Shown piece by piece: positions 4,953 through 28,723 of a DNA stretch of 64,000 nt; position 1 is the first letter of the stretch, and the number at the start of each line of letters is the position of its first letter. The DNA is taken from the sequence record NC_019526.1; one strand, 5' to 3'. Under the pieces are notes generated by a model, which saw nothing but the letters and a program-made list of their open reading frames with translations, was not told where the DNA came from and searched no databases. The translations under genes were made by a program, and so were the position numbers.

Positions 4953-4953
4953 G

Positions 4954-5456: not shown

Positions 5457-5921
5457 ATGGGTTTTGATACAAGAGAAGGTGCACTCTTTTATGCAAATCA
5501 AATATGTAATTTAGTTTTGTATTACAAAAGTAATGAAAATTTATTAGATGAATATAAATGTTTGTATTCTAAAGTCGATGATGTATTAAGAATTTCTTTA
5601 GAAATAGAACACAAAAACCCATTCCCTGAATCAATTATTGATTTTCAAGAAAAATATATTAATTATATTCCAGGTAAAGAATGTGAATTAATTCTTTCCG
5701 ATGTATTTGGCCATAGTATCAAAATCGATCCCAGTGTTCTAAATGAAGAATTGAATACCAGTACAGAAGAAGGTTATTTCCAGAAGAGTACTATATACAA
5801 TTCTGATGAATTGTTCTGCATTATTCTTTTTGAAAATATAGTGCGTAAAATTCCTTTTCAATTCTACATTGATTTAGAAACAATTAATTACCTAATAAAA
5901 GAGAAAAATTATGAGATATAA
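5457..5921 (+). CDS. family A protein
   Basis: STEEGYFQKSTIY; ATG 5457 follows AAGG SD. Confidence 0.8.
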   Translation: MGFDTREGALFYANQICNLVLYYKSNENLLDEYKCLYSKVDDVLRISLEIEHKNPFPESIIDFQEKYINYIPGKECELILSDVFGHSIKIDPSVLNEELNTSTEEGYFQKSTIYNSDELFCIILFENIVRKIPFQFYIDLETINYLIKEKNYEI

Positions 5922-6246
5922 AATATACAAAAGCGACCTCCTTGTTGTAGCTGAATACATTTGTGATGATATGTTCAATATGTTCAAAAATGAACATGAT
6001 TTTATTTTAAATTTAAGTACTAAAAAATTTAAGTTGAACTATTATGGTTCATATGAATTATCTGAACACTATTCAATTGATTTAAATGATTGTACTCAGA
6101 TGCAGGACGATGAATTGTTTCAATACTCTTTAATTTTTTATTTTAATTTATTAAGTTTAAAGGATATTGTATCGCTTCAAAAAGAAATGCTTACTATACA
6201 AGATGATACATATGGCACTAAAGAAATTAATTTTATTGACTTTTGA
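5911..6246 (+). CDS. family A protein
   Basis: MQDDELFQYSLIF. Confidence 0.8.
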   Translation: MRYKIYKSDLLVVAEYICDDMFNMFKNEHDFILNLSTKKFKLNYYGSYELSEHYSIDLNDCTQMQDDELFQYSLIFYFNLLSLKDIVSLQKEMLTIQDDTYGTKEINFIDF

Positions 6247-6250
6247 ATGT

Positions 6251-6286: not shown

Positions 6287-6319
6287 GGTGATACAAAACC
6301 ATAAAAAGAGGAATATATA

Positions 6320-6685
6320 GTGCAGACAAATCAAGAAATACAAATAAAATTAAAAATTAATAATTATTATAATAATACAGTTAGTGCTTCATATAATGAA
6401 GAAGTTTTGTACGAAATAAATTATTCCATGAATGATTCCATTTTTACATTTCGTGAGTACAATGGTATCACTTTAATAAGATCTTATATAATTCCAGTTA
6501 TTGATTATACCGAAATGCAAGATGATGAATTGTTTCAGTACTCTTTAATATACGATCTGGAACATGTTATTCCCTTTGACTCTATGGTTGAATTGCAGGG
6601 TATTATGAAATCACGTACACAACTACAAGGTGAGATTGAATACACATTTATCACAATGAATAAGAAGAATTATTATGTACAATGA
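6320..6685 (+). CDS. family A protein
   Basis: MQDDELFQYSLIY; GTG start with GAGG SD. Confidence 0.8.
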   Translation: MQTNQEIQIKLKINNYYNNTVSASYNEEVLYEINYSMNDSIFTFREYNGITLIRSYIIPVIDYTEMQDDELFQYSLIYDLEHVIPFDSMVELQGIMKSRTQLQGEIEYTFITMNKKNYYVQ

Positions 6686-9579: not shown

Positions 9580-9782
9580 TGAATGATTTGGATTCACTGT
9601 TGTGGTATACTTTATCCGTTCTTTCATTTGAACGTGATAAACACAAAGTACAAGCTTCTAAAAATCCAGACATGTTACAGAAAAAGAAAGAATACGCATT
9701 AGTGTATTCTTTGGAAAAATCATTTATTTCTATGCATCTGGAATACAGAGAATACAGAACATCAAATGGTATTAAAAAATGA
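9579..9782 (+). CDS. small hypothetical protein
   Basis: TAATG overlap with the upstream gene. Confidence 0.6.
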   Translation: MNDLDSLLWYTLSVLSFERDKHKVQASKNPDMLQKKKEYALVYSLEKSFISMHLEYREYRTSNGIKK

Positions 9783-10114
9783 AATATAAATCCATAGTAC
9801 ACAAAAGATTTAAGTCAATATATTACACGGAAATTAATGTTCATAAAAAAGTAAAAGGTATTGATTTTTATATTGATAAAGTATATCTGGATTATGATGT
9901 AGTTACTAATACATTCGAATGTACAGACCTCTTTGATTCAATACCAGTACCTAACTTGGCTGAATTAAGTGAAGAAGAAGAATTTCAGTACTCATTAGTA
10001 TATGAAGATATATGGGGATTTAAATGGGATTATTATCGAATGGTGTCTTATCAAAAAGCACTAATATCCTCTATAAAAAAACAAAATTACTTATTAATTA
10101 ACCTGGAATATTAA
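9779..10114 (+). CDS. family A protein
   Basis: LSEEEEFQYSLVY. Confidence 0.8.
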   Translation: MKYKSIVHKRFKSIYYTEINVHKKVKGIDFYIDKVYLDYDVVTNTFECTDLFDSIPVPNLAELSEEEEFQYSLVYEDIWGFKWDYYRMVSYQKALISSIKKQNYLLINLEY

Positions 10115-10115
10115 T

Positions 10116-10649
10116 ATGCAAAACAAGTACAACTATAATGACCCAGAATTTGCTACACTCGCATATGATATAGCAAAAATGGTAAAAGACTTAAAGGAAT
10201 GTGCTATTGGTACTAAGGATATCAGTACTGTAATGAATACCGATGTAAATTTTAAGAAAGAATTACAGGTGACTGATTCGACAAATCCATTGGCTGCATT
10301 CAAGAATTGTGTGGTAAATTACTATGGTGTAGTACAATGTAACATCGGATATAAATCCCACGAATGTAATATAGTAACTTTTGATGCATATGGAAATCTC
10401 CATGAAATTGATATTTATAAGGGTCAAAAATTAATCATTAAATTCATGGATAGATATCAATGTAGCATATCATATCATTTCGAATTACCAAAAATTGATG
10501 GTGCATTCATTGATAATTATGATGCTTATATTTTTCAGTTAAGCACTACAAATGAATATTACAGTATCATTGATTTTGTACTTAGAATGAAAATGAAATT
10601 CCAGAGTAATTTGTACTTAAAAGGAAGTATCCTTGATCTGGTGTTATAA
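10116..10649 (+). CDS. family A protein
   Basis: YDAYIFQLSTTN. Confidence 0.75.
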   Translation: MQNKYNYNDPEFATLAYDIAKMVKDLKECAIGTKDISTVMNTDVNFKKELQVTDSTNPLAAFKNCVVNYYGVVQCNIGYKSHECNIVTFDAYGNLHEIDIYKGQKLIIKFMDRYQCSISYHFELPKIDGAFIDNYDAYIFQLSTTNEYYSIIDFVLRMKMKFQSNLYLKGSILDLVL

Positions 10650-13434: not shown

Positions 13435-13487
13435 TTGACATTTGTTCATTTTGTGATATAGTATTAAAATGAAATTCAAGTACTTGA
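13435..13487 (+). promoter_or_regulatory. sigma70-type promoter with extended -10, followed by a 12-bp palindrome
   Basis: TTGACA (13435)...TGATATAGT (to 13462); TCAAGTACTTGA at 13476-13487. Confidence 0.75.
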
Positions 13488-14041: not shown

Positions 14042-14416
14042 ATGTCATTTAAAAGAGATAGAGAATATATCGACACAATAATAAAAATTATAAAACAATT
14101 AAAAAGTCAAAATTCTGATCTAGGAACTTCAATATACAATGAATATTGCTCTTTTGGTTATTTGTGTTATAATTACAATGAACCAACATTGACTTATTTT
14201 TATGATAAAAAAGATAAAGATTTCGAAAAGTTTTCTACTACACTTGAAGTACCTTCATATGATATCAGTACAGAAGAAGGTTATTTTCAGGCATCTTTGA
14301 TGTATACAGATTCACAAATGCGAGTAATGTTTTTATTTGTTGAATTGAAAAAGAATTTTAAAAATGATTCATTTGTTATTCCCATGAAGTTACTAAATGA
14401 TAATTTAATATATTAA
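14042..14416 (+). CDS. family A protein
   Basis: ISTEEGYFQASLMY. Confidence 0.8.
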   Translation: MSFKRDREYIDTIIKIIKQLKSQNSDLGTSIYNEYCSFGYLCYNYNEPTLTYFYDKKDKDFEKFSTTLEVPSYDISTEEGYFQASLMYTDSQMRVMFLFVELKKNFKNDSFVIPMKLLNDNLIY

Positions 14417-14421
14417 AGGAT

Positions 14422-14820
14422 ATGTTTCTTATGTCTGAATTTGAAAAAATTATTAAACGTTGTGAAATATATTTTTATCATATTATAAAGAATATAGGAA
14501 AAACAAAAAAATCTACAGTTATAAATTGTGAATACAAAGATAATGGATTTATTTGTTATACACCAGAAAATAATGAATGTTATTTTTATTTCCCAGATCC
14601 AGAATTTGGTTCTTCTGGTATAAAAACAGAAATACCAGATGATGTTCTAACTGAAGAAGGTTATTTTCAGTACTCAACTATTTTTGATGATGAAAAATTA
14701 TTCAGTATGGTGTTAATGAAATATTTTAAAGATAATTGTGATTTTGGATTTTCTGTAGAGGCTCCTGATTGTCTTTTTGACTTCCTACAACGAACCGTAT
14801 ACAATGAAAATACTAACTGA
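14422..14820 (+). CDS. family A protein
   Basis: LTEEGYFQYSTIF. Confidence 0.8.
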   Translation: MFLMSEFEKIIKRCEIYFYHIIKNIGKTKKSTVINCEYKDNGFICYTPENNECYFYFPDPEFGSSGIKTEIPDDVLTEEGYFQYSTIFDDEKLFSMVLMKYFKDNCDFGFSVEAPDCLFDFLQRTVYNENTN

Positions 14821-14998
14821 GAGTGATTGCTACAGAATATGTTCTGAAGTATCTTTAAACTCAATCAATAAAAATAAAGTACAACGTGCAGAACTAATAT
14901 TAGTAAGATTTATGGGTACAAACTTTGAAGGAATTGCTTTGTATAATTATATGAATTGTTTAATGGAATATTGTAATGAGTTACATAACAGAAAATAG
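14804..14998 (+). CDS. family B protein
   Basis: ELILVRFMGTNFEGIALYNYMNCL. Confidence 0.7.
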   Translation: MKILTESDCYRICSEVSLNSINKNKVQRAELILVRFMGTNFEGIALYNYMNCLMEYCNELHNRK

Positions 14999-15398
14999 TT
15001 ACGAAAGAGATATTTTTATGTGTTCAGAAATAATGAGAATTCATGAACGATTTATTGGTCTTGATTCTTCTACGTGGAGTTTCAGGGAGGATGCATATTT
15101 AATTTTCAGCCCAGGAACCAAAAATCAAATACAGTACCATCTTTCATCACAAGAACGAAAAGAGTTATTTTTTAATGGTTCTGCTTTTCTGAGTTCAATC
15201 GATTTGGATTATCCACTCAAAGAAGACCTTGATTTGTGTACAGAAGAAGGTTATTTTCAGGGTTCATTAATTCTTGACAAAAAATATTTAACAGTATATA
15301 CTATTTTTCAGTACCTTGATAAAAATTGTAATTCTGCGTTCTCTATTGATATGGTACCTTTTTTGAACGGGTTTAGACGAAAATATGAAAATAGTTGA
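14976..15398 (+). CDS. family A protein
   Basis: LCTEEGYFQGSLIL. Confidence 0.8.
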   Translation: MSYITENSYERDIFMCSEIMRIHERFIGLDSSTWSFREDAYLIFSPGTKNQIQYHLSSQERKELFFNGSAFLSSIDLDYPLKEDLDLCTEEGYFQGSLILDKKYLTVYTIFQYLDKNCNSAFSIDMVPFLNGFRRKYENS

Positions 15399-15780
15399 TT
15401 ATGATTACCAAAGGGATCTAGCTATATCTAATATCATTTTGGAACTCTGTGAAGATGATCCTTATTATACTGTAGTTCGAGGGTATAGTAATAATGAATA
15501 CAAAAGTGATGGGTTTTTGGTTTATTCCAATGGAACACCCGTAAATGAAATTCTTGTATTTCCAATGTTCAATGAAATACTACAAAAGAACATGGTACCA
15601 AATAAACTTGTTAAATTAGTCCAAACTGATTTGTTGTCCGAAGAATCATATTTTCAACACAGTACTTTATATGATGCATTAGAATTGCATGTTATGTTTA
15701 TTTTTCAGTACTTAATGAAATATAGTACACATTCAGTATCAATGCCAATGAGATCAATCTGGAATGAATATGAAAAATAG
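15385..15780 (+). CDS. family A protein
   Basis: LSEESYFQHSTLY. Confidence 0.8.
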   Translation: MKIVDYDYQRDLAISNIILELCEDDPYYTVVRGYSNNEYKSDGFLVYSNGTPVNEILVFPMFNEILQKNMVPNKLVKLVQTDLLSEESYFQHSTLYDALELHVMFIFQYLMKYSTHSVSMPMRSIWNEYEK

Positions 15781-16300
15781 TTATATCTATGATGAAAAAG
15801 AAAACAAAGATGAACTAATTCAACACATGACTATACAAGAATGTTTTGAATACGCTGATAAAGTAATTGATTTATATAATATCTTACATAATAAACCAAA
15901 AATAAAAATACTCAATTTAGCTGAACTAGAGTCAGATAAATCAAGAAAACACAAATCTTTTGAATATACAAGTAATGATGATTTGGTTTATTCAGAAGAT
16001 AATCATTATTTTGTTGGTACTTCATTTATTGAGATTTATACTGGAATACGATATATTCCAGAGAGTGTTCATAAAATATTAGGTATAACATCAGGTACAA
16101 CAAGTAAACTTATTGATATCGGTGATGTTATCATTGAGAACACTGAAGAGGATATCTTCCAGTACAGCACAGTTTACAGTGATCACGAATTGAAGCATTT
16201 GATTATTTTAAGTGCAATTAAAAAAAATAGGTGTAGAGAGTTCTTTATGGATTTAAATTATTTGGAATTTTTATTAGATTATCATTCTATCTTAAATTAA
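15764..16300 (+). CDS. family A protein
   Basis: NTEEDIFQYSTVY. Confidence 0.8.
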   Translation: MNMKNSYIYDEKENKDELIQHMTIQECFEYADKVIDLYNILHNKPKIKILNLAELESDKSRKHKSFEYTSNDDLVYSEDNHYFVGTSFIEIYTGIRYIPESVHKILGITSGTTSKLIDIGDVIIENTEEDIFQYSTVYSDHELKHLIILSAIKKNRCREFFMDLNYLEFLLDYHSILN

Positions 16301-16310
16301 AAAACAAACT

Positions 16311-16832
16311 ATGAAACCAATTTACACTGAAAGTATTAAACTTATTAATGACATTGATGATTTCTTTAAATTTGTAAATTCAAATTCTTATTATGCACTT
16401 CATAATTTGAATATACTAATTTTTGATCATCCAGGTTCGGTTATTTCTGCATTTGAACCAAAAAATTTTTATCAAATCTGTTTAATTAGAGATAATGTAC
16501 AGGAATCAATTTTTAAGGTGTCATTGAATACAAGATATGAATACTGGAATGAATCAAGAATGTTTTATTTCGACGCGAGCAGAAATGATTTTTCTATATG
16601 TGAAAAAACAAAAATCCAAAATACTGTTGATATTTTGGAATATGATAACAATATAGAAGAGTTAGCATTCCAGTACAGTACTGAAGTACAACTGGAATTT
16701 GTTCCTGTTTGTGTATTGGCTTCATACTTAAAGAAGAATCACGACCCGAAATATCCATTATTTAAACTGATACTCAATGATGTTGATTTTTTATTAAAAC
16801 GATTCAAGGAAATAGAAGATTATGATTGGTAA
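16311..16832 (+). CDS. family A protein
   Basis: NIEELAFQYSTEV. Confidence 0.8.
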   Translation: MKPIYTESIKLINDIDDFFKFVNSNSYYALHNLNILIFDHPGSVISAFEPKNFYQICLIRDNVQESIFKVSLNTRYEYWNESRMFYFDASRNDFSICEKTKIQNTVDILEYDNNIEELAFQYSTEVQLEFVPVCVLASYLKKNHDPKYPLFKLILNDVDFLLKRFKEIEDYDW

Positions 16833-17313
16833 TTTAGTTGATTTTGCTTCAGTATCAAAATTCTCAGAAAATTTAATTAGAATTCATAAAGCATTTACTG
16901 ATGGTTTCTTTTTGAAAGTACCGAACTTTTGTACTAAACTGGAAGAAGTACAAGGTGAGTATGAATATTCGGTTATTCAACCAATAAAATGTTCACAAAT
17001 GTATACCAGTTTAACTGAAGAATATATTATTGATATTAATGATATATATTTTATATCTTTCAATCCTGATTCAGTACTTGAGATATACATTAATGCCGTT
17101 AGATCAAAAGTACTTAGTACAAAAGATGTAAATTCATTTGATATATCAGAGGAGGGTTACTTCCAGGGAAGCACGATTTATGAACCAGCAATGTTAAATT
17201 CTATTTTCATTGCATCTGTTCTAAATCGAAGTGATTGTGATAAATTTTATTTTGATTTAGATTATTATGATCTTTGTGTTGAGTATATGGAAAAATATAA
17301 TTATGTTCAATGA
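16822..17313 (+). CDS. family A protein
   Basis: ISEEGYFQGSTIY. Confidence 0.8.
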   Translation: MIGNLVDFASVSKFSENLIRIHKAFTDGFFLKVPNFCTKLEEVQGEYEYSVIQPIKCSQMYTSLTEEYIIDINDIYFISFNPDSVLEIYINAVRSKVLSTKDVNSFDISEEGYFQGSTIYEPAMLNSIFIASVLNRSDCDKFYFDLDYYDLCVEYMEKYNYVQ

Positions 17314-17797
17314 ACGTATCAGAACTGCACAAGAAATTATTCAAATTATAGTAGCAATAGAATCTACTGATAAAAAGTATGATGATTTCAAAAGTAATTT
17401 TACAGAAAAATATGTTCAGGACTCGGATTTTATTCAGTACTATATTAAAGGTGAAGAATCTGTAATATTCTATGCAAATGAAACATATATTTGTGATTAT
17501 GACAATTCTTCTAGATTTAATTACATCTGTTTTATTCCAAAATCAAATATTATAGTATATCGTATGTCTGATGAATTCGAAACAATATATGAATATGAGC
17601 TGTTTAAAGATTTTTCAGAAGAACTTGCATTTCAGTACAGTACCTTGTACAATTATGATATAATTGAAATGATGATTATGTTCTGGTATTTTAACCAGAT
17701 CTACAATGGCTCTTTTTATATTAATATGAATTTATTTGAAAAAGCCAAAAAAATATATGAGAGATATCATGACTTCGAATACAAATCCATTAATTGA
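17303..17797 (+). CDS. family A protein
   Basis: FSEELAFQYSTLY. Confidence 0.8.
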   Translation: MFNERIRTAQEIIQIIVAIESTDKKYDDFKSNFTEKYVQDSDFIQYYIKGEESVIFYANETYICDYDNSSRFNYICFIPKSNIIVYRMSDEFETIYEYELFKDFSEELAFQYSTLYNYDIIEMMIMFWYFNQIYNGSFYINMNLFEKAKKIYERYHDFEYKSIN

Positions 17798-18359
17798 ACA
17801 CGATAGTCAATTTTTTTACGAAAAAATAACTAATAGTATAGAATTATTAAAAAATATAGTCACTTATTTAAATCAAAATGATATGGAATATGTTGCTCAT
17901 AAAACTGGAGATTTGTATTTTTATATTACAAATGAAAACCCTCGTATTATGTCATTCCATACTGGTGAATATTCTTTTATGGATTTTTATACTAGTACAG
18001 AAAAGAAAGATGGTAGAAATTCAGTAGACATATTCAATAATAAAAAGAAAACGTGTATAGATTTTAATATACTACAAAATACTGATTCTTTTTTTCTCTC
18101 AGATTCCAGAAATGGTACAGCGAATGTAATTGATGCGTCAAAAATAATTGAATTGCCTATAATTAAAGTTCAAACAGAAGAAGAAAGATTTCAGTACAGT
18201 ACTGTGTATAATGATATTGAATTGAGTAGTATTGAATTGTATTATAAATTTATGAAAGAACAATTGTATTTTTACGTTACATTAGATGGTGTTGAAGAAA
18301 TTCAAACTGTACTTCAAACAATACACAATGATTTACCAAAATATATAAGGAAAAAATAA
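17769..18359 (+). CDS. family A protein
   Basis: QTEEERFQYSTVY. Confidence 0.8.
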   Translation: MTSNTNPLIEHDSQFFYEKITNSIELLKNIVTYLNQNDMEYVAHKTGDLYFYITNENPRIMSFHTGEYSFMDFYTSTEKKDGRNSVDIFNNKKKTCIDFNILQNTDSFFLSDSRNGTANVIDASKIIELPIIKVQTEEERFQYSTVYNDIELSSIELYYKFMKEQLYFYVTLDGVEEIQTVLQTIHNDLPKYIRKK

Positions 18360-18856
18360 TGAATTGTGAATATAAAAAATCTAAACACATCACGGATTCG
18401 TTGGTAAAATTAATCAAATCAATACTGAATGGTGCAATCGATGGACGACTAAACTATGATGACAGTGATGACATTATTAATGTTACATTAAAATCCAACA
18501 AAAAGAGTTATAGGAATTTATTTTCTACCGGGTGGTATTATAGTGAGTATTTACTTGAAGACAACTCTTCATTGGGATATTCAGAAACCCATTATTTTGC
18601 TTTTGATCCAAATGATAGTTCTCTTGTTGTTACGATTCGAACATGTAATGGTAAAAGAACAAGAGAGAAAATTAATACATCTGGACTTAATATAGATACA
18701 GAAGAAGGGTGGTTCCAGTACAGTACTTTATACGATGATACTGAACTATTTGCTATTATGTTATGGTGTGCATTTAAGAAAGAAAACTTCCCATCATGTT
18801 TAGTTGAATTTTCAGAATTTTTTAAATATTTGGAAGAAACAAATGCTATTATCTGA
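18359..18856 (+). CDS. family A protein
   Basis: DTEEGWFQYSTLY. Confidence 0.8.
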   Translation: MNCEYKKSKHITDSLVKLIKSILNGAIDGRLNYDDSDDIINVTLKSNKKSYRNLFSTGWYYSEYLLEDNSSLGYSETHYFAFDPNDSSLVVTIRTCNGKRTREKINTSGLNIDTEEGWFQYSTLYDDTELFAIMLWCAFKKENFPSCLVEFSEFFKYLEETNAII

Positions 18857-19424
18857 TATCAAATCTTTTAGTACTGAACTGGATGTAATTAAAAATATCA
18901 TTATTAAGATGATTGAAATTCACAGAACTAAAAGACGATCTACGTCTTTTAGTGAAGAAGGTTTTGAACTTGAGCGTGGATTGTTTCATATTGATTTGAT
19001 GATTAGTGATTATGAATGTATTTTTAGTTTAAGAAACGATTCGTCTCAAATGAAAAATACTGGGATTGATTTATCCATTATTCCACATCATCAAATTATA
19101 CTTGGTGGTTCTGGAAACGTATACATTTCACCCTTCGAATCTGGATTTAGTAGAAGTATAGCTTTACCAAAAAATGAAGGTAGTGAACCTTACATTTTAA
19201 TTAACGATGATGCACTTGATGAATGGAAATTTCAGTTAAGTACATTATATGATCCAATAATCGTTGATATAATAAACCTAGAAGAAGAACTAAGAGATCA
19301 CTTAGCCTCTTTGGAGCACAACAATAATGTATATGCACCTTTGTTATTGGTTGTTGATTTAAAATGTTTAGAAAAGAAAAAACACGATTTGAATTCTATG
19401 CTTGAATTTTTAGAGAACATATAA
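18843..19424 (+). CDS. family A protein
   Basis: ALDEWKFQLSTLY. Confidence 0.8.
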   Translation: MLLSDIKSFSTELDVIKNIIIKMIEIHRTKRRSTSFSEEGFELERGLFHIDLMISDYECIFSLRNDSSQMKNTGIDLSIIPHHQIILGGSGNVYISPFESGFSRSIALPKNEGSEPYILINDDALDEWKFQLSTLYDPIIVDIINLEEELRDHLASLEHNNNVYAPLLLVVDLKCLEKKKHDLNSMLEFLENI

Positions 19425-19427
19425 AAC

Positions 19428-20036
19428 ATGAAATTAGAATATTTCCCAAATTTAGAATACAAACATTGTATTGCTTATTCAATGTTTGTGGAAGATTTAA
19501 TTAACGCATTACATGATCCAGAAATACGAAGAGAATGTGGAATTATAAGAATAGAAAATGATAGATTTTATATCAACACTGGAATTAGAAAAATAGATCT
19601 GGATATATTAAGTGTAGATACAACCTCTACACCAACCTTGATTTCTTCCAGAGTTGGTAATTTCGAATTTTACTGGACTCACTGTTATGAATTCAATAAA
19701 GATTCTAAACATGATTTTATGATAGATGGTGATTTGTGCGAAAAAATTAAGTACAGTTATGACTATACAGAAGAAATGTTCTTTCAAAACAGCTTATTAT
19801 ACAAAAACTGTGATTTGTTTTATATTATATTATTCAATTATTTAAAATGTAATTTAAATCATTCATTCTGTATGGCATCTGCACCCATCCCTGAAGATTT
19901 TTTTAAATTAATTCCAAATTTACTTTACATTGCTACCGAAAAGGGGTATTATGGTGATCTGTTAGAGTTGATGAAAAATATTCATCCAAATAACAACGAT
20001 AAAAGTTCATATCTATCAGGATTTAGCAATCTATGA
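19428..20036 (+). CDS. family A protein
   Basis: YTEEMFFQNSLLY. Confidence 0.8.
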   Translation: MKLEYFPNLEYKHCIAYSMFVEDLINALHDPEIRRECGIIRIENDRFYINTGIRKIDLDILSVDTTSTPTLISSRVGNFEFYWTHCYEFNKDSKHDFMIDGDLCEKIKYSYDYTEEMFFQNSLLYKNCDLFYIILFNYLKCNLNHSFCMASAPIPEDFFKLIPNLLYIATEKGYYGDLLELMKNIHPNNNDKSSYLSGFSNL

Positions 20037-20596
20037 CATACGAAGAATACAAAAAGACAATACCAGTACTCGCTGAAATTGTTTCATTACTAAAAAATCA
20101 TCTAAGTAAAAGAACCATATACAACGATAGATTCTTCACCTTACCCAAATCCAATTTTTATATAAAACAAATCAATGATGCTGATATTGACATAAGAATT
20201 TCAAAAAATAGTGATTCTATTATTCGCGTTGCAAAAGAATCTCAGTGTTTTGATGGAGAGATTCCTATGTTACTTCGTCAGTTCGGTGATGTATATTGTT
20301 CATCCAGAAAACACCCAGGGTATATTAAAATATATTCAAGTGAAAGTGACATAGATTTACTTGATGTTGACTGCCCAGAAGAGCAATTATTTCAATATAG
20401 TACAATTCTTTCTAATATAGATCTTATCGTACTTGATCTTGAGTTAGAACTTCAAAAAGTACTTGACGAAAATGTTTACTGTGTAATTACATTATTCTAT
20501 GATAATGATTACTATAGTGAATGTGCTTCATACAATGATTATGTAAATCTACGAGATGATTTAAAAGATGAAAAAAGAACATGGGAACATTATTAA
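20033..20596 (+). CDS. family A protein
   Basis: CPEEQLFQYSTIL. Confidence 0.8.
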   Translation: MTYEEYKKTIPVLAEIVSLLKNHLSKRTIYNDRFFTLPKSNFYIKQINDADIDIRISKNSDSIIRVAKESQCFDGEIPMLLRQFGDVYCSSRKHPGYIKIYSSESDIDLLDVDCPEEQLFQYSTILSNIDLIVLDLELELQKVLDENVYCVITLFYDNDYYSECASYNDYVNLRDDLKDEKRTWEHY

Positions 20597-21152
20597 TAAC
20601 TTAAAAGTTATTAAAGAATTAAGCACTGCTATGATTTTGTTGTACAAAAATACAGACAAAATTAATGCTGATAATTATATTCTAAGTACTACCAGATTAA
20701 ATCCATACGAAAATGGAACATTGTACTTGAGAACAAAAGCATCTCAAAATATCATTGGAATTATGAATGAATCAGTTTGCCTGGAAGAATATGCATACAA
20801 AGATGAAGAGGTACCTGGTAATTACAGGGTTATTATACGAGATTCGGCATTCTTCTTATGTAGTCCGATGAATCCATTTTTCAATAAAATATATGCTGAT
20901 TTTAATTATACAAATGGTGTTGAAACTTTTCCCATTCCCAGTGAAGATACATGGGAAGAAGAGATGTTTCAACTATCATTAGTAGTACCAAATATGGTAT
21001 GTTCCGAAGTACTGGAATTATATAAAGAAATACACAATAATATTGAAAGTCATTTTTATATTTCATATGAATATGAAAATTATGATACCACATTATTAAA
21101 AGATGCATTAAATGACGTTAAAAAATTTATCAAGCACTACATCAACAAATGA
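20568..21152 (+). CDS. family A protein
   Basis: TWEEEMFQLSLVV. Confidence 0.8.
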   Translation: MKKEHGNIINNLKVIKELSTAMILLYKNTDKINADNYILSTTRLNPYENGTLYLRTKASQNIIGIMNESVCLEEYAYKDEEVPGNYRVIIRDSAFFLCSPMNPFFNKIYADFNYTNGVETFPIPSEDTWEEEMFQLSLVVPNMVCSEVLELYKEIHNNIESHFYISYEYENYDTTLLKDALNDVKKFIKHYINK

Positions 21153-21159
21153 TACTGAA

Positions 21160-21690
21160 ATGTACTTATTGTACAAAAATATTTTACTTGAATTAAAAAG
21201 ATTATTGCATACTGATAATGTACGCGATAATTATCTACATCAAGATATAAATGGTGAAATTTATTGTATAATTTCTGATGGTAAAATCGCATTATATGCT
21301 AATTCCGAAAATATAGCATTCACTTATGTTTTATTTGCTTATTCGTTTAATTCACCAAATTACGTATCAGAAAAATATAGAGTAGAATATGATTCATATG
21401 TATACCTTGATCGTGATAATTCAACTAATGAATATATGATTAATCACGAAACAAATAATATCATCCAATTGATTAAAGAAAATGAGTTGAGTTCAGATGA
21501 ATTAGAAAGTTTATTATTCCAACATAATACACTGTATTCAGATGAAGATAAATTTTGTATTTGGATGGATTATTATATCAGAGACTACATCGAAGATGGA
21601 TATTATTTCTGTGTAAACTACAACAGACTAAATGAATTCAGTACTGACATATATGAAAATATTCTATTGGAATTAAAGAAATATGATTGA
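21160..21690 (+). CDS. family A protein
   Basis: ELESLLFQHNTLY; start probably ATG 21160. Confidence 0.75.
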   Translation: MYLLYKNILLELKRLLHTDNVRDNYLHQDINGEIYCIISDGKIALYANSENIAFTYVLFAYSFNSPNYVSEKYRVEYDSYVYLDRDNSTNEYMINHETNNIIQLIKENELSSDELESLLFQHNTLYSDEDKFCIWMDYYIRDYIEDGYYFCVNYNRLNEFSTDIYENILLELKKYD

Positions 21691-22294
21691 ATTAAAATTT
21701 AAAATACAAGAACTAAAAGAACTGGTAATTAATTTAAAGAATGTAAATGATAAATTCCATCTCTCAGAAAATTTCATGATTTATATTCCGGGTACCGAAT
21801 CAACACTCATTCATGAAATGTCAACAAAAGGAATATATTCCAATATTACATTGAAATCAAAAGATTACAAAACTAATATCTGTTACAACACTATCTCTTT
21901 AATCAGGAGTTCAGATCCCTCTGAAGAACGTATCAGGAAATCTAAAACAGTAGGTTCAATTTATAGTAGTTCATGTAATATATATTCTTTATCCGATAAT
22001 ACTAAAATGGAGATTGGTATATATGAAAACTATCATAGAAAGTGTGATACCAGTGAAAACGGAACTATTGAATTACCTGAATATGTAAAAGATTCTGATG
22101 AATTTGAAGCATTATTATTTCAATACAGTACAGAGAGTGGTATTAAGTACAACCGATTATTAAAAATGCGTATCATACACGAAATATGTGATTTACTTCA
22201 ATATGAAGAAATATCAATAGATGATACCTTATTTGATTTGAATTCAGATGATTTAAAAACAATTATACAGGAATTAAAATTAAAATTATGCTGA
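21683..22294 (+). CDS. family A protein
   Basis: EFEALLFQYSTES. Confidence 0.8.
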   Translation: MIELKFKIQELKELVINLKNVNDKFHLSENFMIYIPGTESTLIHEMSTKGIYSNITLKSKDYKTNICYNTISLIRSSDPSEERIRKSKTVGSIYSSSCNIYSLSDNTKMEIGIYENYHRKCDTSENGTIELPEYVKDSDEFEALLFQYSTESGIKYNRLLKMRIIHEICDLLQYEEISIDDTLFDLNSDDLKTIIQELKLKLC

Positions 22295-22851
22295 CATTGA
22301 CCGAAATTATTGAGTACGACAATAAAATTATCAATCTGTTGAGTGATATATCATTTGAATTTAACAAAAAAGAAGATAAAAACAACAATAAAGCCACTAT
22401 ACTGAAAGTAAATGATAGTGAATTAGTTGTATTAGAAAATAATCTTCATTTTTATTCTGTTATACTTAAAGTGTATAATGGTATGTCAGACACTCCGTGG
22501 TATATGGTGAAAAACACAGATGATTATGATACATTTCGTGGTATTAAACCATTCATCAACGAGTATGGTATTTTTTGTACTGCAAATGATTACGATGTAT
22601 TATATGATGAATACGATCAATTCGGTACTGTTCATAACGTACTAACAGAAGAACAGTACGCTTGTATAGAAAGCACTGCGTTTCAGTTGAGTACTGAGTT
22701 TGATTTACAAGTAGTAAGAGTATTAGCAATGCAAACCAATTTGTATTACAACAAAAGACACTATCAAATAATGTGTAATACAAAAATTCAGGATCATTTA
22801 TATAATCCAAAGTTAATTTTAAATCTAGAAAAATATCTGGAAAAATTATGA
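22288..22851 (+). CDS. family A protein
   Basis: CIESTAFQLSTEF. Confidence 0.75.
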   Translation: MLTLTEIIEYDNKIINLLSDISFEFNKKEDKNNNKATILKVNDSELVVLENNLHFYSVILKVYNGMSDTPWYMVKNTDDYDTFRGIKPFINEYGIFCTANDYDVLYDEYDQFGTVHNVLTEEQYACIESTAFQLSTEFDLQVVRVLAMQTNLYYNKRHYQIMCNTKIQDHLYNPKLILNLEKYLEKL

Positions 22852-23339
22852 AAGAAATTATTGAACTAATAGAATTAATACAATCATGTATAAGTTCATA
22901 TAAACTTGCTGCCGGTGAACATAATTTGAATGCTGATTTTGATTTAGTAGTCAATAATCAAAAGAAATGCATTCACTTGATTAAAAAATCCAGTACTAAA
23001 ACAATCAAACACACAGCACTCATGATAGCTTCTTCACATCCTGCTAAAAAATATAATTCAAATATTGCTAATATAAGTTCACTGTACAAACCAGAAAGTA
23101 CATCTTCATATATCAGTTCAATTAAAAGTGAATTAGATTTTCATAAATGCACTTTGGATTCTTATGAAGAATTAGAATTTCAGTACAGTACGATAATTAC
23201 ACGAAGTGATATTTTTATAATTCAATGCTTATTATATTCAATTGATTTTAAAGATATTGTGTACATGACAAATGATTTCACGAAATACAATTATATTGAA
23301 ATACTCCGATTATTAAAGGACAAACTATGCCAAAATTAG
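22848..23339 (+). CDS. family A protein
   Basis: SYEELEFQYSTII. Confidence 0.8.
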   Translation: MKEIIELIELIQSCISSYKLAAGEHNLNADFDLVVNNQKKCIHLIKKSSTKTIKHTALMIASSHPAKKYNSNIANISSLYKPESTSSYISSIKSELDFHKCTLDSYEELEFQYSTIITRSDIFIIQCLLYSIDFKDIVYMTNDFTKYNYIEILRLLKDKLCQN

Positions 23340-23920
23340 ATGCACAGTACTGTGATAAATTACTTAATGCATTGATTACTATACAGAAGAATATAAAAAA
23401 AGAAAAGAGTATTCAAATTTACTACAATGACAGTTATATTCTCGTACAATGCAACCCAGATGGGAATTATGTAGAGTTCAGTTTAAAGAAAGAAGATGTT
23501 CATGATTGTATTAGTATTGATTTACATGAAGCAACACCACAACAAAGTTTAAAAAATATCATTAAAGCATATAAAAGAACTACATATGCATTTGACACTT
23601 TAGTACACAGATATAAAACATTTTATTGTATGTTTGATACAGATGACTATGATTTTAATTTAGTGGGATTTGATGAAAATAATATAATTAACATTCCTTA
23701 TGACTTTGATGATGAATTATATTTTCAGTACAGTACTTTGTATAGTTTACCACCACAGAGCGTTCTTGAGCTTCATAAAAACATTCATAAAAAATGTAAA
23801 AATGAACTACCAATTAAAAGTGTAGTAAGAATTTCATATCTATCCATCGAATTAGATCAAAACGAAATGGATGAAATTTTGGAATCTTTGTATTCATTGG
23901 TTCCTGTGTTTAAGCATTAA
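23327..23920 (+). CDS. family A protein
   Basis: FDDELYFQYSTLY. Confidence 0.8.
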   Translation: MPKLDAQYCDKLLNALITIQKNIKKEKSIQIYYNDSYILVQCNPDGNYVEFSLKKEDVHDCISIDLHEATPQQSLKNIIKAYKRTTYAFDTLVHRYKTFYCMFDTDDYDFNLVGFDENNIINIPYDFDDELYFQYSTLYSLPPQSVLELHKNIHKKCKNELPIKSVVRISYLSIELDQNEMDEILESLYSLVPVFKH

Positions 23921-23957
23921 AATCCCCCTTGACTGGGGTTTTTTTATTTGTTATAAT
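23921..23957 (+). promoter_or_regulatory. terminator hairpin with an embedded sigma70 promoter
   Basis: AATCCCC-cttgact-GGGGTT followed by a T-run; TTGACT (23929)-17 bp-TATAAT (23952). Confidence 0.7.
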
Positions 23958-23976
23958 AAAAAATAGAGAATATAAA

Positions 23977-24603
23977 ATGAAAAAAGAATCATATAACATA
24001 CTTCGTGTATGTGAAAATTTAATATTGTTGTTACTGGCTTATAAGAAAAATATAAATTTAAGCAAGAAAATTCTTGATTATCATATTAATATTAATATTA
24101 CATGTAGTACTCATATTTCAATATATTTAAATATTAGTAATTTTGGTTCTATTACAACAACATCATCCAATATAATTTCATTTAATGCTGATAATATTCA
24201 ACCAGTTGAATTAAATTTACCAATTGAAGATATTAAAGGTGAAATGATTTATTTTGATGACCGATATTGTGAATATGATGTTAATAGTCCAAATTTAGTC
24301 GGAGCGTATTTAAAAAAATATGATCCTGATATTGATGGATACAATGAAACAAACTGCCATGAAGTAATGGAAAAGACGTATGATGAATGGGCTTTTCAGT
24401 ACAGTACATTATATGATTTTGTTCCAGATAAAGAAGATTATTTTTACTTGAAAAATTTCATGCATAAATTGGGTAACGAATTCGATTATACATATTCAAA
24501 TATTTTATTTGAATCAAAAGTGGATATTGTGAATCTAAAATCCGCAATTGATATATGTACCGAAACTGTTAAAAGGAAGATTGATGAAAACTCCGATATT
24601 TGA
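23977..24603 (+). CDS. family A protein
   Basis: TYDEWAFQYSTLY. Confidence 0.8.
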   Translation: MKKESYNILRVCENLILLLLAYKKNINLSKKILDYHININITCSTHISIYLNISNFGSITTTSSNIISFNADNIQPVELNLPIEDIKGEMIYFDDRYCEYDVNSPNLVGAYLKKYDPDIDGYNETNCHEVMEKTYDEWAFQYSTLYDFVPDKEDYFYLKNFMHKLGNEFDYTYSNILFESKVDIVNLKSAIDICTETVKRKIDENSDI

Positions 24604-25099
24604 AAAATCAAAGGAATATGCACAACGCATATCTGATTGTATTGAACTTATTCAATCAATGAGAAAAACTTTTTACGTAAATCACAAAGGTTCTTTTCGA
24701 TATCAACATGAAAATAATGGACTTATTACCATGAGCAGAGGCAAATCGCCTTTTGGTGAGGTTATATTAACATATGTACCAGATAATATTCATATTCCGT
24801 TCAATGATAATTATCTAATAGAAATATCAAATTATATTCCAGTACTAGATTATACAGAAGAAACCGAATTTCAATATAGTACTTTGTATAATAATGAAGA
24901 ATTGTTAATGCATTATATATATTCCATTCTATGGAATTTGAACATCAAAGGGAAAATTTATATAAACCAAAATATAAATTTAAGAACATATACAATGGCA
25001 TTGAAAAATATCAATAGTTATTTTCAGGACACAAATTATAATTTATATAAAGAATTGTGTAATAAAAAATTCAAATCAATGGAAATAAACTACTTATGA
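24584..25099 (+). CDS. family A protein
   Basis: YTEETEFQYSTLY; AGGA SD before ATG 24584. Confidence 0.8.
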   Translation: MKTPIFEKSKEYAQRISDCIELIQSMRKTFYVNHKGSFRYQHENNGLITMSRGKSPFGEVILTYVPDNIHIPFNDNYLIEISNYIPVLDYTEETEFQYSTLYNNEELLMHYIYSILWNLNIKGKIYINQNINLRTYTMALKNINSYFQDTNYNLYKELCNKKFKSMEINYL

Positions 25100-25680
25100 T
25101 TGAAAGATATGAGTTTAGTACAAGAATATTAAATGAAGCACTCAAAAAAGTGCCATTAATTGTGGAAAAACATAGTAAATTATATTCTAAGTACAATAGT
25201 AATAGTACATTCAATGTTGGTATTAAAAATCAGAATTATGAAACTAACATTGATGATAGTTCCATTGAATATGGTTCAGCAAATGGTTCTTCATGGACAA
25301 TTGAATTTGACAATTCACTCCATGATTATTATAACTGGACACCAGAATATAATGAATTTAGCTTTAATACATCATCTGTTGCTTTTTTGGTTAGTAGTGA
25401 ACATATGTTGTACGCTCTTTATGATTTTAATACTGAAATTTTTATAATCGAAGACACCGATTTATCTTTTGAAGTAAATTGCATAGATTCGCTACGTGAA
25501 ATGATTTTTACATTACAACTGGAGTACTCAGATATTATTGAGACTGAATTACTATGGAGTATGCTATCACCGATGATTGAGTTTAAAAAGCTGTTGACAC
25601 CTGACAAAGATGTTGCTATTATATTTGAACCATATAGACAAGAGTTTTTAGAATTAAACCCAGAGATACCAAACGTATGA
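25096..25680 (+). CDS. divergent family A-like protein
   Basis: SLREMIFTLQLEY at the equivalent position. Confidence 0.65.
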   Translation: MIERYEFSTRILNEALKKVPLIVEKHSKLYSKYNSNSTFNVGIKNQNYETNIDDSSIEYGSANGSSWTIEFDNSLHDYYNWTPEYNEFSFNTSSVAFLVSSEHMLYALYDFNTEIFIIEDTDLSFEVNCIDSLREMIFTLQLEYSDIIETELLWSMLSPMIEFKKLLTPDKDVAIIFEPYRQEFLELNPEIPNV

Positions 25681-26087
25681 TTCTATATCACTGTAGTACT
25701 GTAAAAATTGACAGCTTTTATATCCCCTTTGGTGGCTTACATTTTGGTGGTATTAATAGTGCTTTAGAAGCGGCGTTACGTAAGCTGAGAAGCCCACGAA
25801 ACACGTTGGATCACAAGGAGATACATATCCATAAATGTTTCGTGGAACTCGGTAAAACACAGCACAGTGAGGATTTGGGTGGTGAGGATTCGTGGAGAGC
25901 GGTGATCGATGAATGCTCACGATTAGGATTTAATTCAGTACAATATAAGAATGTATATGAACCTGATTCAGTACCTAGCTATATGATTTGGGACGCCAGT
26001 AGAGTAAAAATCATAGAAGTGGATTGTATTCATATGGATGACGCCGAACAAATACTGGAAGAATTTTATGATTCACATTGTACTTAA
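25677..26087 (+). CDS. putative ADP-ribosyltransferase-fold protein (ART-PolyVal-like)
   Basis: LYHCST...F...GLHFG...A...; C-terminal GFNSVQYKNVYE...SYMIWDASRVKII matches the YHGT/GFYF/GYDG..YVVF..QIK pattern as recalled. Confidence 0.55.
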   Translation: MILYHCSTVKIDSFYIPFGGLHFGGINSALEAALRKLRSPRNTLDHKEIHIHKCFVELGKTQHSEDLGGEDSWRAVIDECSRLGFNSVQYKNVYEPDSVPSYMIWDASRVKIIEVDCIHMDDAEQILEEFYDSHCT

Positions 26088-26107
26088 ACTAATACAGGTA
26101 ACGATTC

Positions 26108-26659
26108 ATGTCAGAACCAATAGAATATTTTAAAGCATGTTCTCGTTTGGTTAATTCAATTTCAAAGGATTTTTTATCAAGAAAACCAAAAGAGTATATT
26201 GATGATGTACTTGGATATAATTTTATATTATATTGTGGTTTTAGTTCATTAAGAATTTCAGTTGATGATGAAAACGAAACACCAGTACTTACAATTTTTA
26301 ATGTTGATTACATAACATGCAACCCAAAAGTATTTCATAAACCACGCTGGTGTATAACTAATATTGTTAACAGTGGTATTCAATGTGGTTTGGTGAAAAA
26401 AATTACCCACCGTTTTGATTCAGACGCTGAACTCATAGATTATGAGAATGATTTTAGTTCTAAGTTATTCTCTAATACTTTAACTGAAGAAGAATTTTTT
26501 CAGTACAGTACGGTACTGAAATTAAACACATTGGAATATTATCTGGAATGGAATAAAACTATAATGCAAGACAATACAAATGAAAAAGTTGTTTGGCATT
26601 GGTATTATGGTGATTTCATTTCAAAAGAAGCTATTGATGAATTATCGAAAAGAATATAA
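26108..26659 (+). CDS. family A protein
   Basis: LTEEEFFQYSTVL. Confidence 0.8.
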   Translation: MSEPIEYFKACSRLVNSISKDFLSRKPKEYIDDVLGYNFILYCGFSSLRISVDDENETPVLTIFNVDYITCNPKVFHKPRWCITNIVNSGIQCGLVKKITHRFDSDAELIDYENDFSSKLFSNTLTEEEFFQYSTVLKLNTLEYYLEWNKTIMQDNTNEKVVWHWYYGDFISKEAIDELSKRI

Positions 26660-26672
26660 TAAGGATTAAAAA

Positions 26673-27161
26673 ATGATGCTTGACATTATCGGAAATTTAG
26701 ATATAGTTAATCAAATCATTCAATCAGCAATTGATGATATTAAGAAGAAGGAGATTGAAGTACGATGGAATTTCTTATCGTCTGATATTGGATACCTTGT
26801 TGATATTAGTGAACCAACAAAGAAACAAATGGTTGTACAAATCAATGCACTAAGTAACAGGCAATCTCTCTGTAAATTTTATATTACAAAGAATGGGATA
26901 ATTCTCAGATATAATAATAAATTGTTGTTTGAATACAAAAACAGTACTAAAACATTCATTACAAATTTATTTGATGAACCATTTTATATTGATGATTTAG
27001 AAAGTACTTTCTTTACTCAAAGATGTTTAAATTCGTTTGGTTCACTGGATAATATAGTATTTGATTATGATATCATGACTGAAACATTAAAGAAAACACA
27101 GGATTTATATTATGCCTACTTGGTGTTTACCCAAAAACGAGAAAATGCTAACACAGCCTGA
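26673..27161 (+). CDS. divergent family A-like protein
   Basis: DLESTFFTQRCL. Confidence 0.6.
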   Translation: MMLDIIGNLDIVNQIIQSAIDDIKKKEIEVRWNFLSSDIGYLVDISEPTKKQMVVQINALSNRQSLCKFYITKNGIILRYNNKLLFEYKNSTKTFITNLFDEPFYIDDLESTFFTQRCLNSFGSLDNIVFDYDIMTETLKKTQDLYYAYLVFTQKRENANTA

Positions 27162-27591
27162 CGATAGCGTATATAAGTGTATTGAGCATTTCGATTATTT
27201 TATTAATTCAAACAAAGAATTTATTGTGGTCGATTGTATACCATTGTATTTCATTAAATCCGATTCAAATACAATCAAAGAATTTAATATGTACTATGGT
27301 AGTGAATTTATATCAATTAAATTAATCAATAAATATTTGAAAAATTCTTATTCAATTGAAAGTTATTACAATGGAATATTTTTGCTCGGTATTAGTAATG
27401 AGTACATAAATTCAGTACTATTAAAATCAAACACAAATAAACCAGTTTATGCTGATCGAGAAGCATTCAATGAAATCGATTTCTTCCAGTATACATGTGG
27501 TGATGCTTATATACCATTACACACCAATACGATGTGTTTAGTTAAAGATAAATTGTTGGAGATTGAAAATGATTTCAAAAAATACTATTAA
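27145..27591 (+). CDS. family A protein
   Basis: FNEIDFFQYTCG. Confidence 0.7.
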   Translation: MLTQPDDSVYKCIEHFDYFINSNKEFIVVDCIPLYFIKSDSNTIKEFNMYYGSEFISIKLINKYLKNSYSIESYYNGIFLLGISNEYINSVLLKSNTNKPVYADREAFNEIDFFQYTCGDAYIPLHTNTMCLVKDKLLEIENDFKKYY

Positions 27592-28060
27592 AACTGGAAT
27601 GCAATGTTTGATTGATTATTTTGAAAATCCAAAATCATACACTGAGGTACTGAAAGGTGATCACACATTTCATTACTACGGTGATGATATTCAGATTATA
27701 GTTGGATTTCATACATTAAAACTTTGTATTATTGATAATAAAAATTCAAATTGTTTTATTTTCTCTCCAGTAAAAATGCGAGAAGATGATATTTGCACCG
27801 AATTCGGTACTATTGTTGCTGTAATTGATGATGATGGTAGAAAAACACATGTATACGATACACTATTCATTGAAAGTTCTACTTTATTTCAATTGAGTTT
27901 AATTCACGATATTAATATTGATGGATTGGATATATTGATGTATAAGTACGGTGAATTACTTGAATTACTAGGGAAATCTAAAATTAATCACAATACTAAA
28001 TACATTAAAGAAGCATGTGAAAATTTATCAAAAGCTCACGTGCAATACTCTAACGAATAA
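27569..28060 (+). CDS. family A protein
   Basis: IESSTLFQLSLIH. Confidence 0.75.
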   Translation: MISKNTIKTGMQCLIDYFENPKSYTEVLKGDHTFHYYGDDIQIIVGFHTLKLCIIDNKNSNCFIFSPVKMREDDICTEFGTIVAVIDDDGRKTHVYDTLFIESSTLFQLSLIHDINIDGLDILMYKYGELLELLGKSKINHNTKYIKEACENLSKAHVQYSNE

Positions 28061-28582: not shown

Positions 28583-28723
28583 ATGTCAAAGAAAAATAAA
28601 GTAAACAACTACGTTGCAAAGTACTGCAATGAGTTCAATAAAGCTCAAACTCACGTAGATCGTAAAAAAGAATTCAAAAAGGGTAAAATCAAACACAAAG
28701 GCGGGAGTGAATACTTCCGCTAA
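28583..28723 (+). CDS. small basic protein of a type common in T4-like phages
   Basis: NNYVAKYCNEFNKAQTHVDRKKEFKKGKIKHK pattern; GGAG SD. Confidence 0.65.
   Translation: MSKKNKVNNYVAKYCNEFNKAQTHVDRKKEFKKGKIKHKGGSEYFR

Follow-up and report, generated by a model that had tools for sequence, protein, structure and literature searches.

The first 31 kb of a 64,000-nucleotide stretch of the Klebsiella jumbo phage vB_KleM_RaK2 (JQ513383 / NC_019526, 345,809 bp) clearly hold a large tandem array of small genes whose products share one short motif, EExxFQxST, built around an invariant Phe-Gln pair. The whole stretch, record positions 248001-312000, is called the window here, and positions are given in its own numbering. 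We found 32 members of this gene family in the window. The family is predicted to be one single-domain alpha/beta protein type, and it has grown by tandem duplication of whole genes in a lineage-specific expansion. The explanation that we consider best, and hold with about even confidence, is that this expanded domain supplies early-expressed cytoplasmic binders, each paralogue having its own target. The multigene family is new and well delimited, and its general kind, the lineage-specific expansion in a large virus, is known. A literature search found no paper describing the family or its motif.

Delineation of the family

The genes in the initial 31 kb are small, tightly spaced and on the plus strand throughout, with a G+C content of 25-29%. 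Every record labels them hypothetical protein. The phages K64-1, Muenster, RCIP0023, KP13-7 and phiKp_21 are 96-98% identical to the window.

A strict regular expression for the motif retrieved 17 plus-strand open reading frames (ORFs) in the window. A seed hidden Markov model (HMM) of the motif plus its downstream helix had been proposed in an earlier reading of the letters without database searches (the sequence-only reading). Built and run, it picked out about 35 plus-strand ORFs from the 329 six-frame ORFs of the window; the best minus-strand ORF in this set was no better than E = 0.3. An iterated full-length profile converged at 31 genes, and a profile of 115 family sequences detected 32 window genes at E < 1e-3, all on the plus strand, in agreement with the at least 32 motif-bearing ORFs that had been claimed. 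We also made a profile from 85 relatives from outside the window (the external-only profile). It recovered 31 of the 32 window members at E < 0.01, most of them over profile positions ~5 to 150 of 166. The motif core is present in 30 of the 32; the members starting at 3207 and 4245 have degenerate versions.

The layout that the sequence-only reading had given needed small corrections. Between 14042 and 25099, 21 of the 22 genes are members, interrupted by one small non-member (14804-14998), exactly as described. The stretch from 26108 to 28060 was said to hold three members and holds two, which start at 26108 and 27569; the genes at 26673 and 27112 are unsupported. Conversely, nine members rather than eight were found in the proximal stretch (2782-10649). 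All nine lie within 2782-10114, and the gene at 10116-10649 is borderline (E = 0.048). The sub-motifs reported as common to the neighbours at 14042, 14422 and 14976, and to those at 5911 and 6320, are present in the sequences. Two members are annotated as shorter genes in the RaK2 record (Table 1). The starts at 4776 and 6428 given there are probably too far downstream, since the longer ORFs (the long form in Muenster) include the family N-terminal part.

Five to six extra members were found in the 50 kb upstream of the window (RaK2 198001-248000). They bring the RaK2 total to at least 37 copies, so the family reaches beyond the array and accounts for ~7% of RaK2 genes. About 10% of RaK2 proteins have been described as paralogues (PMC3622015).

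Two further ORFs were noted. The sole long minus-strand ORF in the array (22556-22954, 132 amino acids (aa), starting with TTG) lies across parts of two family genes. It has no profile match and is annotated in no record, and is thus probably spurious. Outside the array, an 86-aa ORF (44999-45259) gave weak matches to the family profile and to the N-terminal profile described below (E = 0.003-0.008). Judged on these matches, it could be a remnant or a distant relative of the family.

Predicted fold

The sequence-only reading had called the N-terminal regions unrelated by eye and had proposed unrelated N-terminal modules joined to a constant docking module, the design of an adaptor library. The description is fair for raw sequences; the N-terminal pieces alone are almost without pairwise similarity. 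The proposal is largely unsupported. The external-only profile and the profiles of the PHROG families align to most members from about residue 5 through to the end, and several members match two or three PHROG families along their whole length. Of 31 N-terminal pieces, 13 were recognised at E < 0.01 by a profile of the pre-motif columns of non-window relatives, which also gave one background match. When N-terminal subfamily profiles were compared by HHalign, 5 of 105 pairs aligned collinearly at a probability of at least 80; among 105 reversed controls the number was 0. The N-terminal helix and strands hold conserved aromatic and aliphatic columns, and one Tyr/Phe column is filled in 112 of the 115 sequences. 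Furthermore, the similarity of the N part follows that of the C part (r = 0.90 over 315 related pairs). No pair combines a strong N-part match with a weak C-part match, and there is thus no sign of module exchange.

Structure prediction, another suggestion of the sequence-only reading, was carried out for two members with AlphaFold2 (18359-18856 and 23327-23920). The order of elements is identical in the two models and includes the N-terminal part: a helix, a meander of 4-6 strands with a disordered insert, a short motif helix, a long helix, a strand and a final helix. The helix and strand said to follow the motif are seen in both models and also as conserved hydrophobic columns. BFVD models of members from RaK2, 121Q and SP27, which were predicted independently, align with the first of our models over ~160 columns with template modelling (TM) scores of 0.5-0.7. 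For the family as a whole, the predicted architecture is an N-terminal helix, a 4-6-strand beta-meander with variable inserts, the short motif helix, a long amphipathic helix, a strand and usually a last helix. The result is largely the one that the sequence-only reading had set against its own proposal, namely one conserved fold with the motif as its core.

In an adaptor library, the motif and the helix would form an exposed docking element for one common phage or host partner, with the remainder of each protein bringing in a target of its own. Such a design would suit the conservation of the polar and acidic motif positions, which far outstrips that of the rest. It would also suit the N-terminal two thirds of each copy, which are specific to the paralogue yet kept between orthologues, and the many long members that resemble the family around the motif only. 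However, the models place the motif inside the domain and not on a terminal peptide, the N-terminal parts do not behave as independent modules, no known docking motif family in Pfam matches, and the common partner is still only postulated. We consider an adaptor library unlikely.

The motif and its codons

The mean column identity of the 115-sequence family alignment is 9%. Against this background Phe and Gln of the motif are each at 100%, Ser is at 91%, and the two acidic positions (E or D) are at 90% and 92%; Thr or Ser stands ahead of the conserved core in 70%. The motif is the most confident region in both AlphaFold2 models, with a predicted local distance difference test score (pLDDT) of 84-94, and is located between the sheet and the long helix. 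It appears to form the core of one shared fold and not a docking module that plugs into a partner. In such a fold, the motif and the subsequent helix would have a stabilising role, and the acidic pair, Gln and Ser may make a small conserved polar patch.

Invariant polar residues in so divergent a family could also be the active or metal-binding site of a small enzyme whose variable parts choose the substrate, and RNA-repair and nucleotide-modifying genes are located downstream of the array in the same region. However, no enzyme family was matched in Pfam, PDB sequences or PDB folds. The degenerate-motif members at 3207 and 4245 are retained under purifying selection, and 30-40 paralogous enzymes per phage would be unprecedented. 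An enzymatic role appears quite improbable to us.

The codons of the motif are clearly biased. Gln is encoded by CAG in 20 of 30 copies (32% genome-wide), the Tyr that is often next by TAC in 15 of 17 (30% genome-wide), and Ser by AGY in 20 of 27 (36% genome-wide). PBECO4 motif codons show the same bias toward CAG, TAC and AGT. As a consequence, an exact 14-mer occurs 14 times against 0.05 expected, and this 14-mer overlaps half-sites of an iterated palindrome that is over-represented genome-wide. The conserved residues might thus be read as the by-product of a repeated DNA element in proteins that are otherwise unrelated. Yet the motif residues are selected at the protein level: both synonymous codons are used at the invariant residues, and both codon classes at Ser. 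The protein profiles align far past the motif, dN/dS (the ratio of nonsynonymous to synonymous substitution rates) is low, and the palindrome is as common outside the family as inside it. Synonymous variation and whole-length protein homology largely refute a DNA-level origin, to which we attach next to no probability. The codon bias fits the genome-wide word preference; the predominance of AGY at the conserved Ser also suits common descent.

The palindrome itself, TTCAGTACTGAA, is 12 bp long, is the extended form of CAGTACTG and is highly iterated across the phage clade. AGTACT occurs 170 times in the window (8-fold over expectation), CAGTACTG 33 times (77-fold), and TTCAGTACTGAA with at most one mismatch 29 times (0.27 expected). 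In the 50 kb upstream, CAGTACTG occurs 94 times (0.4 expected). Its copies fall in all three codon frames and in non-coding and intergenic DNA, and they are equally common outside family genes. Enrichment was also observed in Muenster, PBECO4, GAP32 and metagenomic relatives. The element is reminiscent of the cyanobacterial HIP1; a literature search found no paper on TTCAGTACTGAA. Some 6-bp palindromes that contain G+C (e.g. AGCGCT, CTGCAG, CTCGAG and CAGCTG) are absent from the window, where base composition predicts ~3.4 of each. This absence may reflect restriction-site avoidance, though the counts are small.

Distribution and evolution

Searched with the family profile, a set of 1.84 billion representative proteins yielded no more than 105 clusters at E 1e-3 or better. 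All are small proteins of RaK2-like jumbo phages, and nearly all are 120-200 aa long, carry the motif and align to most of the profile. About 30 are RaK2-type orthologues; the rest belong to relatives, mostly known just as sequencing-run assemblies, or to contigs of ~350 kb that are labelled E. coli. Only the exhaustive profile search reached this far; word-indexed protein searches, whether started from one member or from the alignment, brought back little beyond near-identical orthologues.

In PBECO4 (Asteriusvirus), 39 profile matches form a syntenic array, upstream of the same methyltransferase and cytidyltransferase genes. GAP32 carries ~6-10 copies, dispersed among tRNA genes in the 50 kb examined. 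Family matches were also found in CBB, in Yersinia fHe-Yen9-03/04, and in jumbo phages of Salmonella and Klebsiella aerogenes. Among viral contigs, a degenerate DNA pattern derived from the motif picked out RaK2-like ones only. The same pattern gave 10 matches in 185,579 prokaryote genomes; none of them carries a family ORF, and we take them to be chance matches. There is no evidence of cellular homologues, within the limits of one strict DNA pattern. The family is confined to RaK2-like phages.

Tandem duplication followed by fast N-terminal divergence, as the sequence-only reading had supposed, agrees with the data. The best paralogue lies within two gene positions for 17 of the 32 members, against ~4 expected, which fits tandem duplication. 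Orthologues at a moderate distance have 35-52% identity in the N part and 52-68% in the C part. A reciprocal-best orthologue in PBECO4 was found for fourteen members. The aligned stretches are 22-56% identical and in several pairs cover most of the protein, and the order of these genes is largely collinear in the distal block. Much of the array is therefore older than the divergence of the two genera, with individual paralogues retained since. The family predates the separation of the Klebsiella (Alcyoneusvirus) and Escherichia (Asteriusvirus) jumbo phages.

Compared with Muenster, dN/dS is 0.00-0.54 in the 30 members that allow its calculation; synonymous differences are absent from the remaining two. 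These ratios indicate that the copies are under purifying selection.

Expression and possible function

Members are clearly acidic, with a median isoelectric point (pI) of 4.85 and a median net charge of -9; the other proteins of the window have a pI of 6.26 and a charge of -1. No hydrophobic segment was found in any member. The array has near-zero intergenic space and consists of long, gap-free plus-strand units. A near-consensus sigma-70 promoter-like site lies in the gap before the main array. A second near-consensus promoter-like site (23929-23957) sits within a terminator-like cassette that is predicted to part two transcription units. The cassette (23919-23957) appears to resemble the promoter/stem-loop cassettes of plastic regions of T4-type genomes. 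In CBB, the equivalent short-gene region is rich in RpoD-type promoters and has been proposed to be early (PMC5259590). In mass spectrometry of RaK2 virions, the structural proteins detected all mapped to two gene clusters other than this array (PMC3622015). Since the gap-free units stand behind host-type promoter-like sites, relatives have an early-type region in this place, and the products are acidic, soluble and not found in virions, members would be early-expressed, acidic, soluble cytoplasmic proteins on one scaffold.

The virion data also disfavour the suggestion of the sequence-only reading that the proteins plug into a virion or injection component. If the members were internal proteins that are packaged or injected, like the products of the T4 internal-protein loci, the motif would be a packaging or protease signal. 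The sole support for this is the analogy of variable proteins with a common short signal. Beyond the mass spectrometry, the models place the motif internally, in the folded core, and the genes sit among small early-type genes, not among morphogenesis genes. A virion role is very improbable.

We also considered self-association. A pair of amphipathic helices and a subsequent strand make up the conserved part, and many co-transcribed paralogues would be produced together. The C-terminal helices could then be a shared interface for homo- or mixed oligomers, with the motif kept for compatibility. Neither the correlated divergence of the N and C parts nor the retained orthologues require an oligomer, however, and we give the idea little credence.

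Under the preferred reading, in which the proteins are binders, the variable sheet and loops would give every paralogue its own target. Host proteins or nucleic acids with a part in takeover or defence are the likeliest targets. An anti-defence or host-targeting role is plausible. More tentatively, and with considerable doubt, the array may be a library of inhibitors or decoys whose fold is still missing from solved structures, every paralogue being retained against its own target in host defence or housekeeping. The family would then rank among the largest known for counter-defence or host takeover in any phage, with at least 37 copies and a spread over several jumbo-phage genera.

Several points weigh against the single-domain binder explanation. 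An invariant Gln, a Ser at 91% and a conserved acidic pair are unusual for a purely structural core, and would also suit a catalytic or shared docking site. In single-sequence profile comparisons, the family resemblance of roughly half of the long members (17757-23977) is limited to the motif and its surroundings. The models are of moderate confidence only (pLDDT 72-75), and their agreement is not fully independent because both used family-wide alignments. Promoter-like matches across the region as a whole are not above chance. Finally, the idea of binders is taken by analogy from other expanded families of large viruses.

Database searches returned no known family. Pfam, searched with 10 members and then with 115, gave no recurrent family and nothing above the curated cut-offs. 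A PDB sequence search with two family profiles gave noise only, and Foldseek comparison of both models with the PDB gave nothing significant (best E = 0.17, TM <=0.25). The PADLOC defence models gave one stray match over the 32 members (E = 0.012), which we do not count. A Nudix-like or other hydrolase was considered and dropped.

Most jumbo-phage genes are without a known function, and the family offers a tractable route to annotating dozens of genes per genome. In RaK2 about 7% of the gene set, and a similar share in PBECO4/121Q-type coliphages, is reduced to one family with a clear signature, a predicted common architecture and an evolutionary history that is now defined. Phages of the RaK2-like group are considered for therapy of Klebsiella and E. 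coli infections. If members are target-specific binders, a wealth of natural inhibitors of bacterial proteins could be drawn from the family.

Other features of the window

Two small paralogue families lie among the proximal genes (Table 1). One consists of eight genes, mostly of 60-75 aa with one of 115 aa, and is of the type that the sequence-only reading had called family B. Among the non-members inside the array, ORF435 (25677-26087, 136 aa) has an orthologue that the Muenster record labels putative ADP-ribosyltransferase via an HHpred match. The label found no support in Pfam, the PDB sequence search or PHROGs. PBECO4 has a syntenic neighbour of orthologue-like size. This label, together with a Ser-Thr pair in the members, led us to consider an ADP-ribosyltransferase; the members gave no significant Pfam, PDB-sequence or Foldseek match.

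Table 1. Features of the array and its surroundings. Positions are those of the window unless another stretch is named; E ext, E value with the external-only profile; pTM, predicted TM score.
Positions	Strand	Feature	E ext	Other evidence
2782..3210	+	Family member ORF378, 142 aa	1.3e-22	Whole-length match; motif present
3207..3623	+	Family member ORF379, 138 aa, degenerate motif	5.4e-08	Whole-length match; HHalign probability 95.9, residues 1-137; paralogue of 4245
4245..4640	+	Family member ORF381, 131 aa, degenerate motif	8.2e-07	HHalign probability 93.0, residues 2-129
4653..4952	+	Short family member, 99 aa; RaK2 record has 4776-4952 only	1.8e-06	Motif variant
4954..5289	+	Short family member ORF383, 111 aa	7e-05	PBECO4 reciprocal-best orthologue
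5367..5921	+	Family member ORF384, 184 aa	9.1e-21	
5911..6246	+	Short family member ORF385, 111 aa	0.0014	Seed HMM E = 1.1e-11; paralogue of 6320
6320..6685	+	Short family member, 121 aa; RaK2 record has 6428-6685 only, Muenster long form	3.1e-07	Seed HMM E = 1.5e-15
9779..10114	+	Short family member ORF397, 111 aa	4.4e-08	
10116..10649	+	Borderline candidate ORF398, 177 aa, not counted		Motif-like stretch; profile E = 0.048; HHalign probability 3.3
14042..14416	+	Family member ORF412, 124 aa	4e-21	Whole-length match
14422..14820	+	Family member ORF413, 132 aa	9.5e-22	
14804..14998	+	Small non-member interrupting array, ORF414, 64 aa		No profile match
14976..15398	+	Family member ORF415, 140 aa	1.4e-17	
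15385..15780	+	Family member ORF416, 131 aa	2.3e-15	
15764..16300	+	Family member ORF417, 178 aa	1.3e-25	phrog_12674 over residues 21-173
16311..16832	+	Family member ORF418, 173 aa	1.8e-14	
16822..17313	+	Family member ORF419, 163 aa	1.7e-24	phrog_12674 E = 3.8e-52; PBECO4 reciprocal-best orthologue
17267..17797	+	Family member ORF420, 176 aa	6.8e-27	
17757..18359	+	Family member ORF421, 200 aa	2e-13	
18359..18856	+	Family member ORF422, 165 aa	4.7e-23	AlphaFold2 model, pLDDT 71.8, pTM 0.69
18843..19424	+	Family member ORF423, 193 aa	4.7e-09	
19428..20036	+	Family member ORF424, 202 aa	2.5e-17	phrog_22855 E = 1.5e-96
20033..20596	+	Family member ORF425, 187 aa	6.6e-09	
20568..21152	+	Family member ORF426, 194 aa	6.6e-11	
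21112..21690	+	Family member ORF427, 192 aa	5.9e-06	
21683..22294	+	Weakest family member ORF428, 203 aa	missed	Inclusive profile only, E = 1.6e-07; motif core present
22288..22851	+	Family member ORF429, 187 aa	0.003	Inclusive profile E = 4.7e-08
22848..23339	+	Family member ORF430, 163 aa	5.6e-07	PBECO4 reciprocal-best orthologue
23327..23920	+	Family member ORF431, 197 aa	8.3e-12	AlphaFold2 model, pLDDT 75.0, pTM 0.69
23977..24603	+	Family member ORF432, 208 aa	2.7e-08	
24584..25099	+	Family member ORF433, 171 aa	3.1e-16	
25096..26087	+	Two non-members inside array: ORF434, 194 aa; ORF435, 136 aa		No family match; only PHROGs of unknown function
26108..26659	+	Family member ORF436, 183 aa	5.8e-06	PBECO4 reciprocal-best orthologue
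26673..27591	+	Two non-members: ORF437, 162 aa; ORF438, 159 aa		Family match not significant
27569..28060	+	Divergent family member ORF439, 163 aa	0.0043	Seed HMM E = 9e-09; PBECO4 reciprocal-best orthologue E = 3.9e-12
2263-2805, 25418-26020, 47582-48031, 48056-48583, 48663-49307 within RaK2 198001-248000		Upstream members ORF269, 321, 363, 364, 365		
20109-20462 within RaK2 198001-248000		Possible sixth upstream member		
13435..13462	+	Near-consensus sigma-70 promoter-like site in gap before main array		11/12 hexamer matches and extended -10 TG
23919..23957	+	Terminator-like hairpin cassette between 23327-23920 and 23977-24603		G+C-rich stem, T-run; -35 hexamer in loop, perfect -10 hexamer 17 nt on
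28700..28721	+	Terminator-like hairpin after second unit		9-bp stem, 5 G-C pairs, then T-run
16668-16681, 17630-17643, 18189-18202, 23723-23736		14-mer, examples in family genes		
42439-42452, 45634-45647	-	14-mer, examples		
4389-4400, 36416-36427, 44798-44809, 51911-51922, 61963-61974		Palindrome, examples		
813-1160, 7185-7409, 7410-7613, 10655-10840, 11010-11201, 12843-13052, 13036-13230, 13232-13414		Eight-gene small family (family B type)		
1883-2167, 2228-2503, 8378-8650, 8635-8946, 8939-9244		Second small paralogue family, 5 genes of 90-103 aa		
42883-43149 / 44682-44984		Downstream paralogue pair		

Comparison with known systems

The top Foldseek hits, type III secretion chaperones and p32/gC1qR-like proteins, have a similar content of an N-terminal helix on an antiparallel sheet with C-terminal helices. 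Neither a chaperone-like nor a p32-like fold was significant (E >=0.17, TM <=0.25, root-mean-square deviation ~15 Å). SUKH-type immunity arrays and their viral relatives are also arrays of fast-diverging small alpha+beta proteins that are thought to bind different targets. These arrays adjoin polymorphic toxins, whereas the RaK2 array has no adjacent toxin gene. No significant match to SUKH-type or other immunity proteins was found in Pfam or by Foldseek in the PDB.

The poxvirus ankyrin/PRANC (F-box-like) proteins are likewise viral and present in many copies, and in them too a short conserved element near the C terminus goes with a variable remainder. In the RaK2 family, however, the variable part appears to be the same fold diverged and not a separate repeat domain, and the motif is internal. 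The 115 members have no F-box or PRANC match above the curated cut-offs of Pfam, and their N parts are not separate modules. To our knowledge, the bacterial host has no SCF ligase. The T4-type internal-protein loci resemble the array in having hypervariable small proteins with one short conserved element in a plastic region of a T4-related genome. That element is N-terminal, cleaved and linked to packaging, whereas the RaK2 element is internal and the proteins were not found in virions (PMC3622015).

The proteins and their RaK2-like relatives are contained in PHROGs 12674, 9317, 22855, 34017, 34636, 22368 and 35972, all of unknown function. There the family is divided into many unlinked, unannotated groups, and neither the common motif nor the size of the superfamily (30-40 copies per genome) is recorded. 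Another lineage-specific expansion in a jumbo phage is that of Bacillus phage G, which has ~35 copies of a zinc ribbon (PMC7824862). As in RaK2, one small domain has been multiplied tens of times in one jumbo-phage lineage. The RaK2 domain is a different one, without a recognisable fold, and unlike the zinc ribbons it is common to several genera, with orthologues retained among them.

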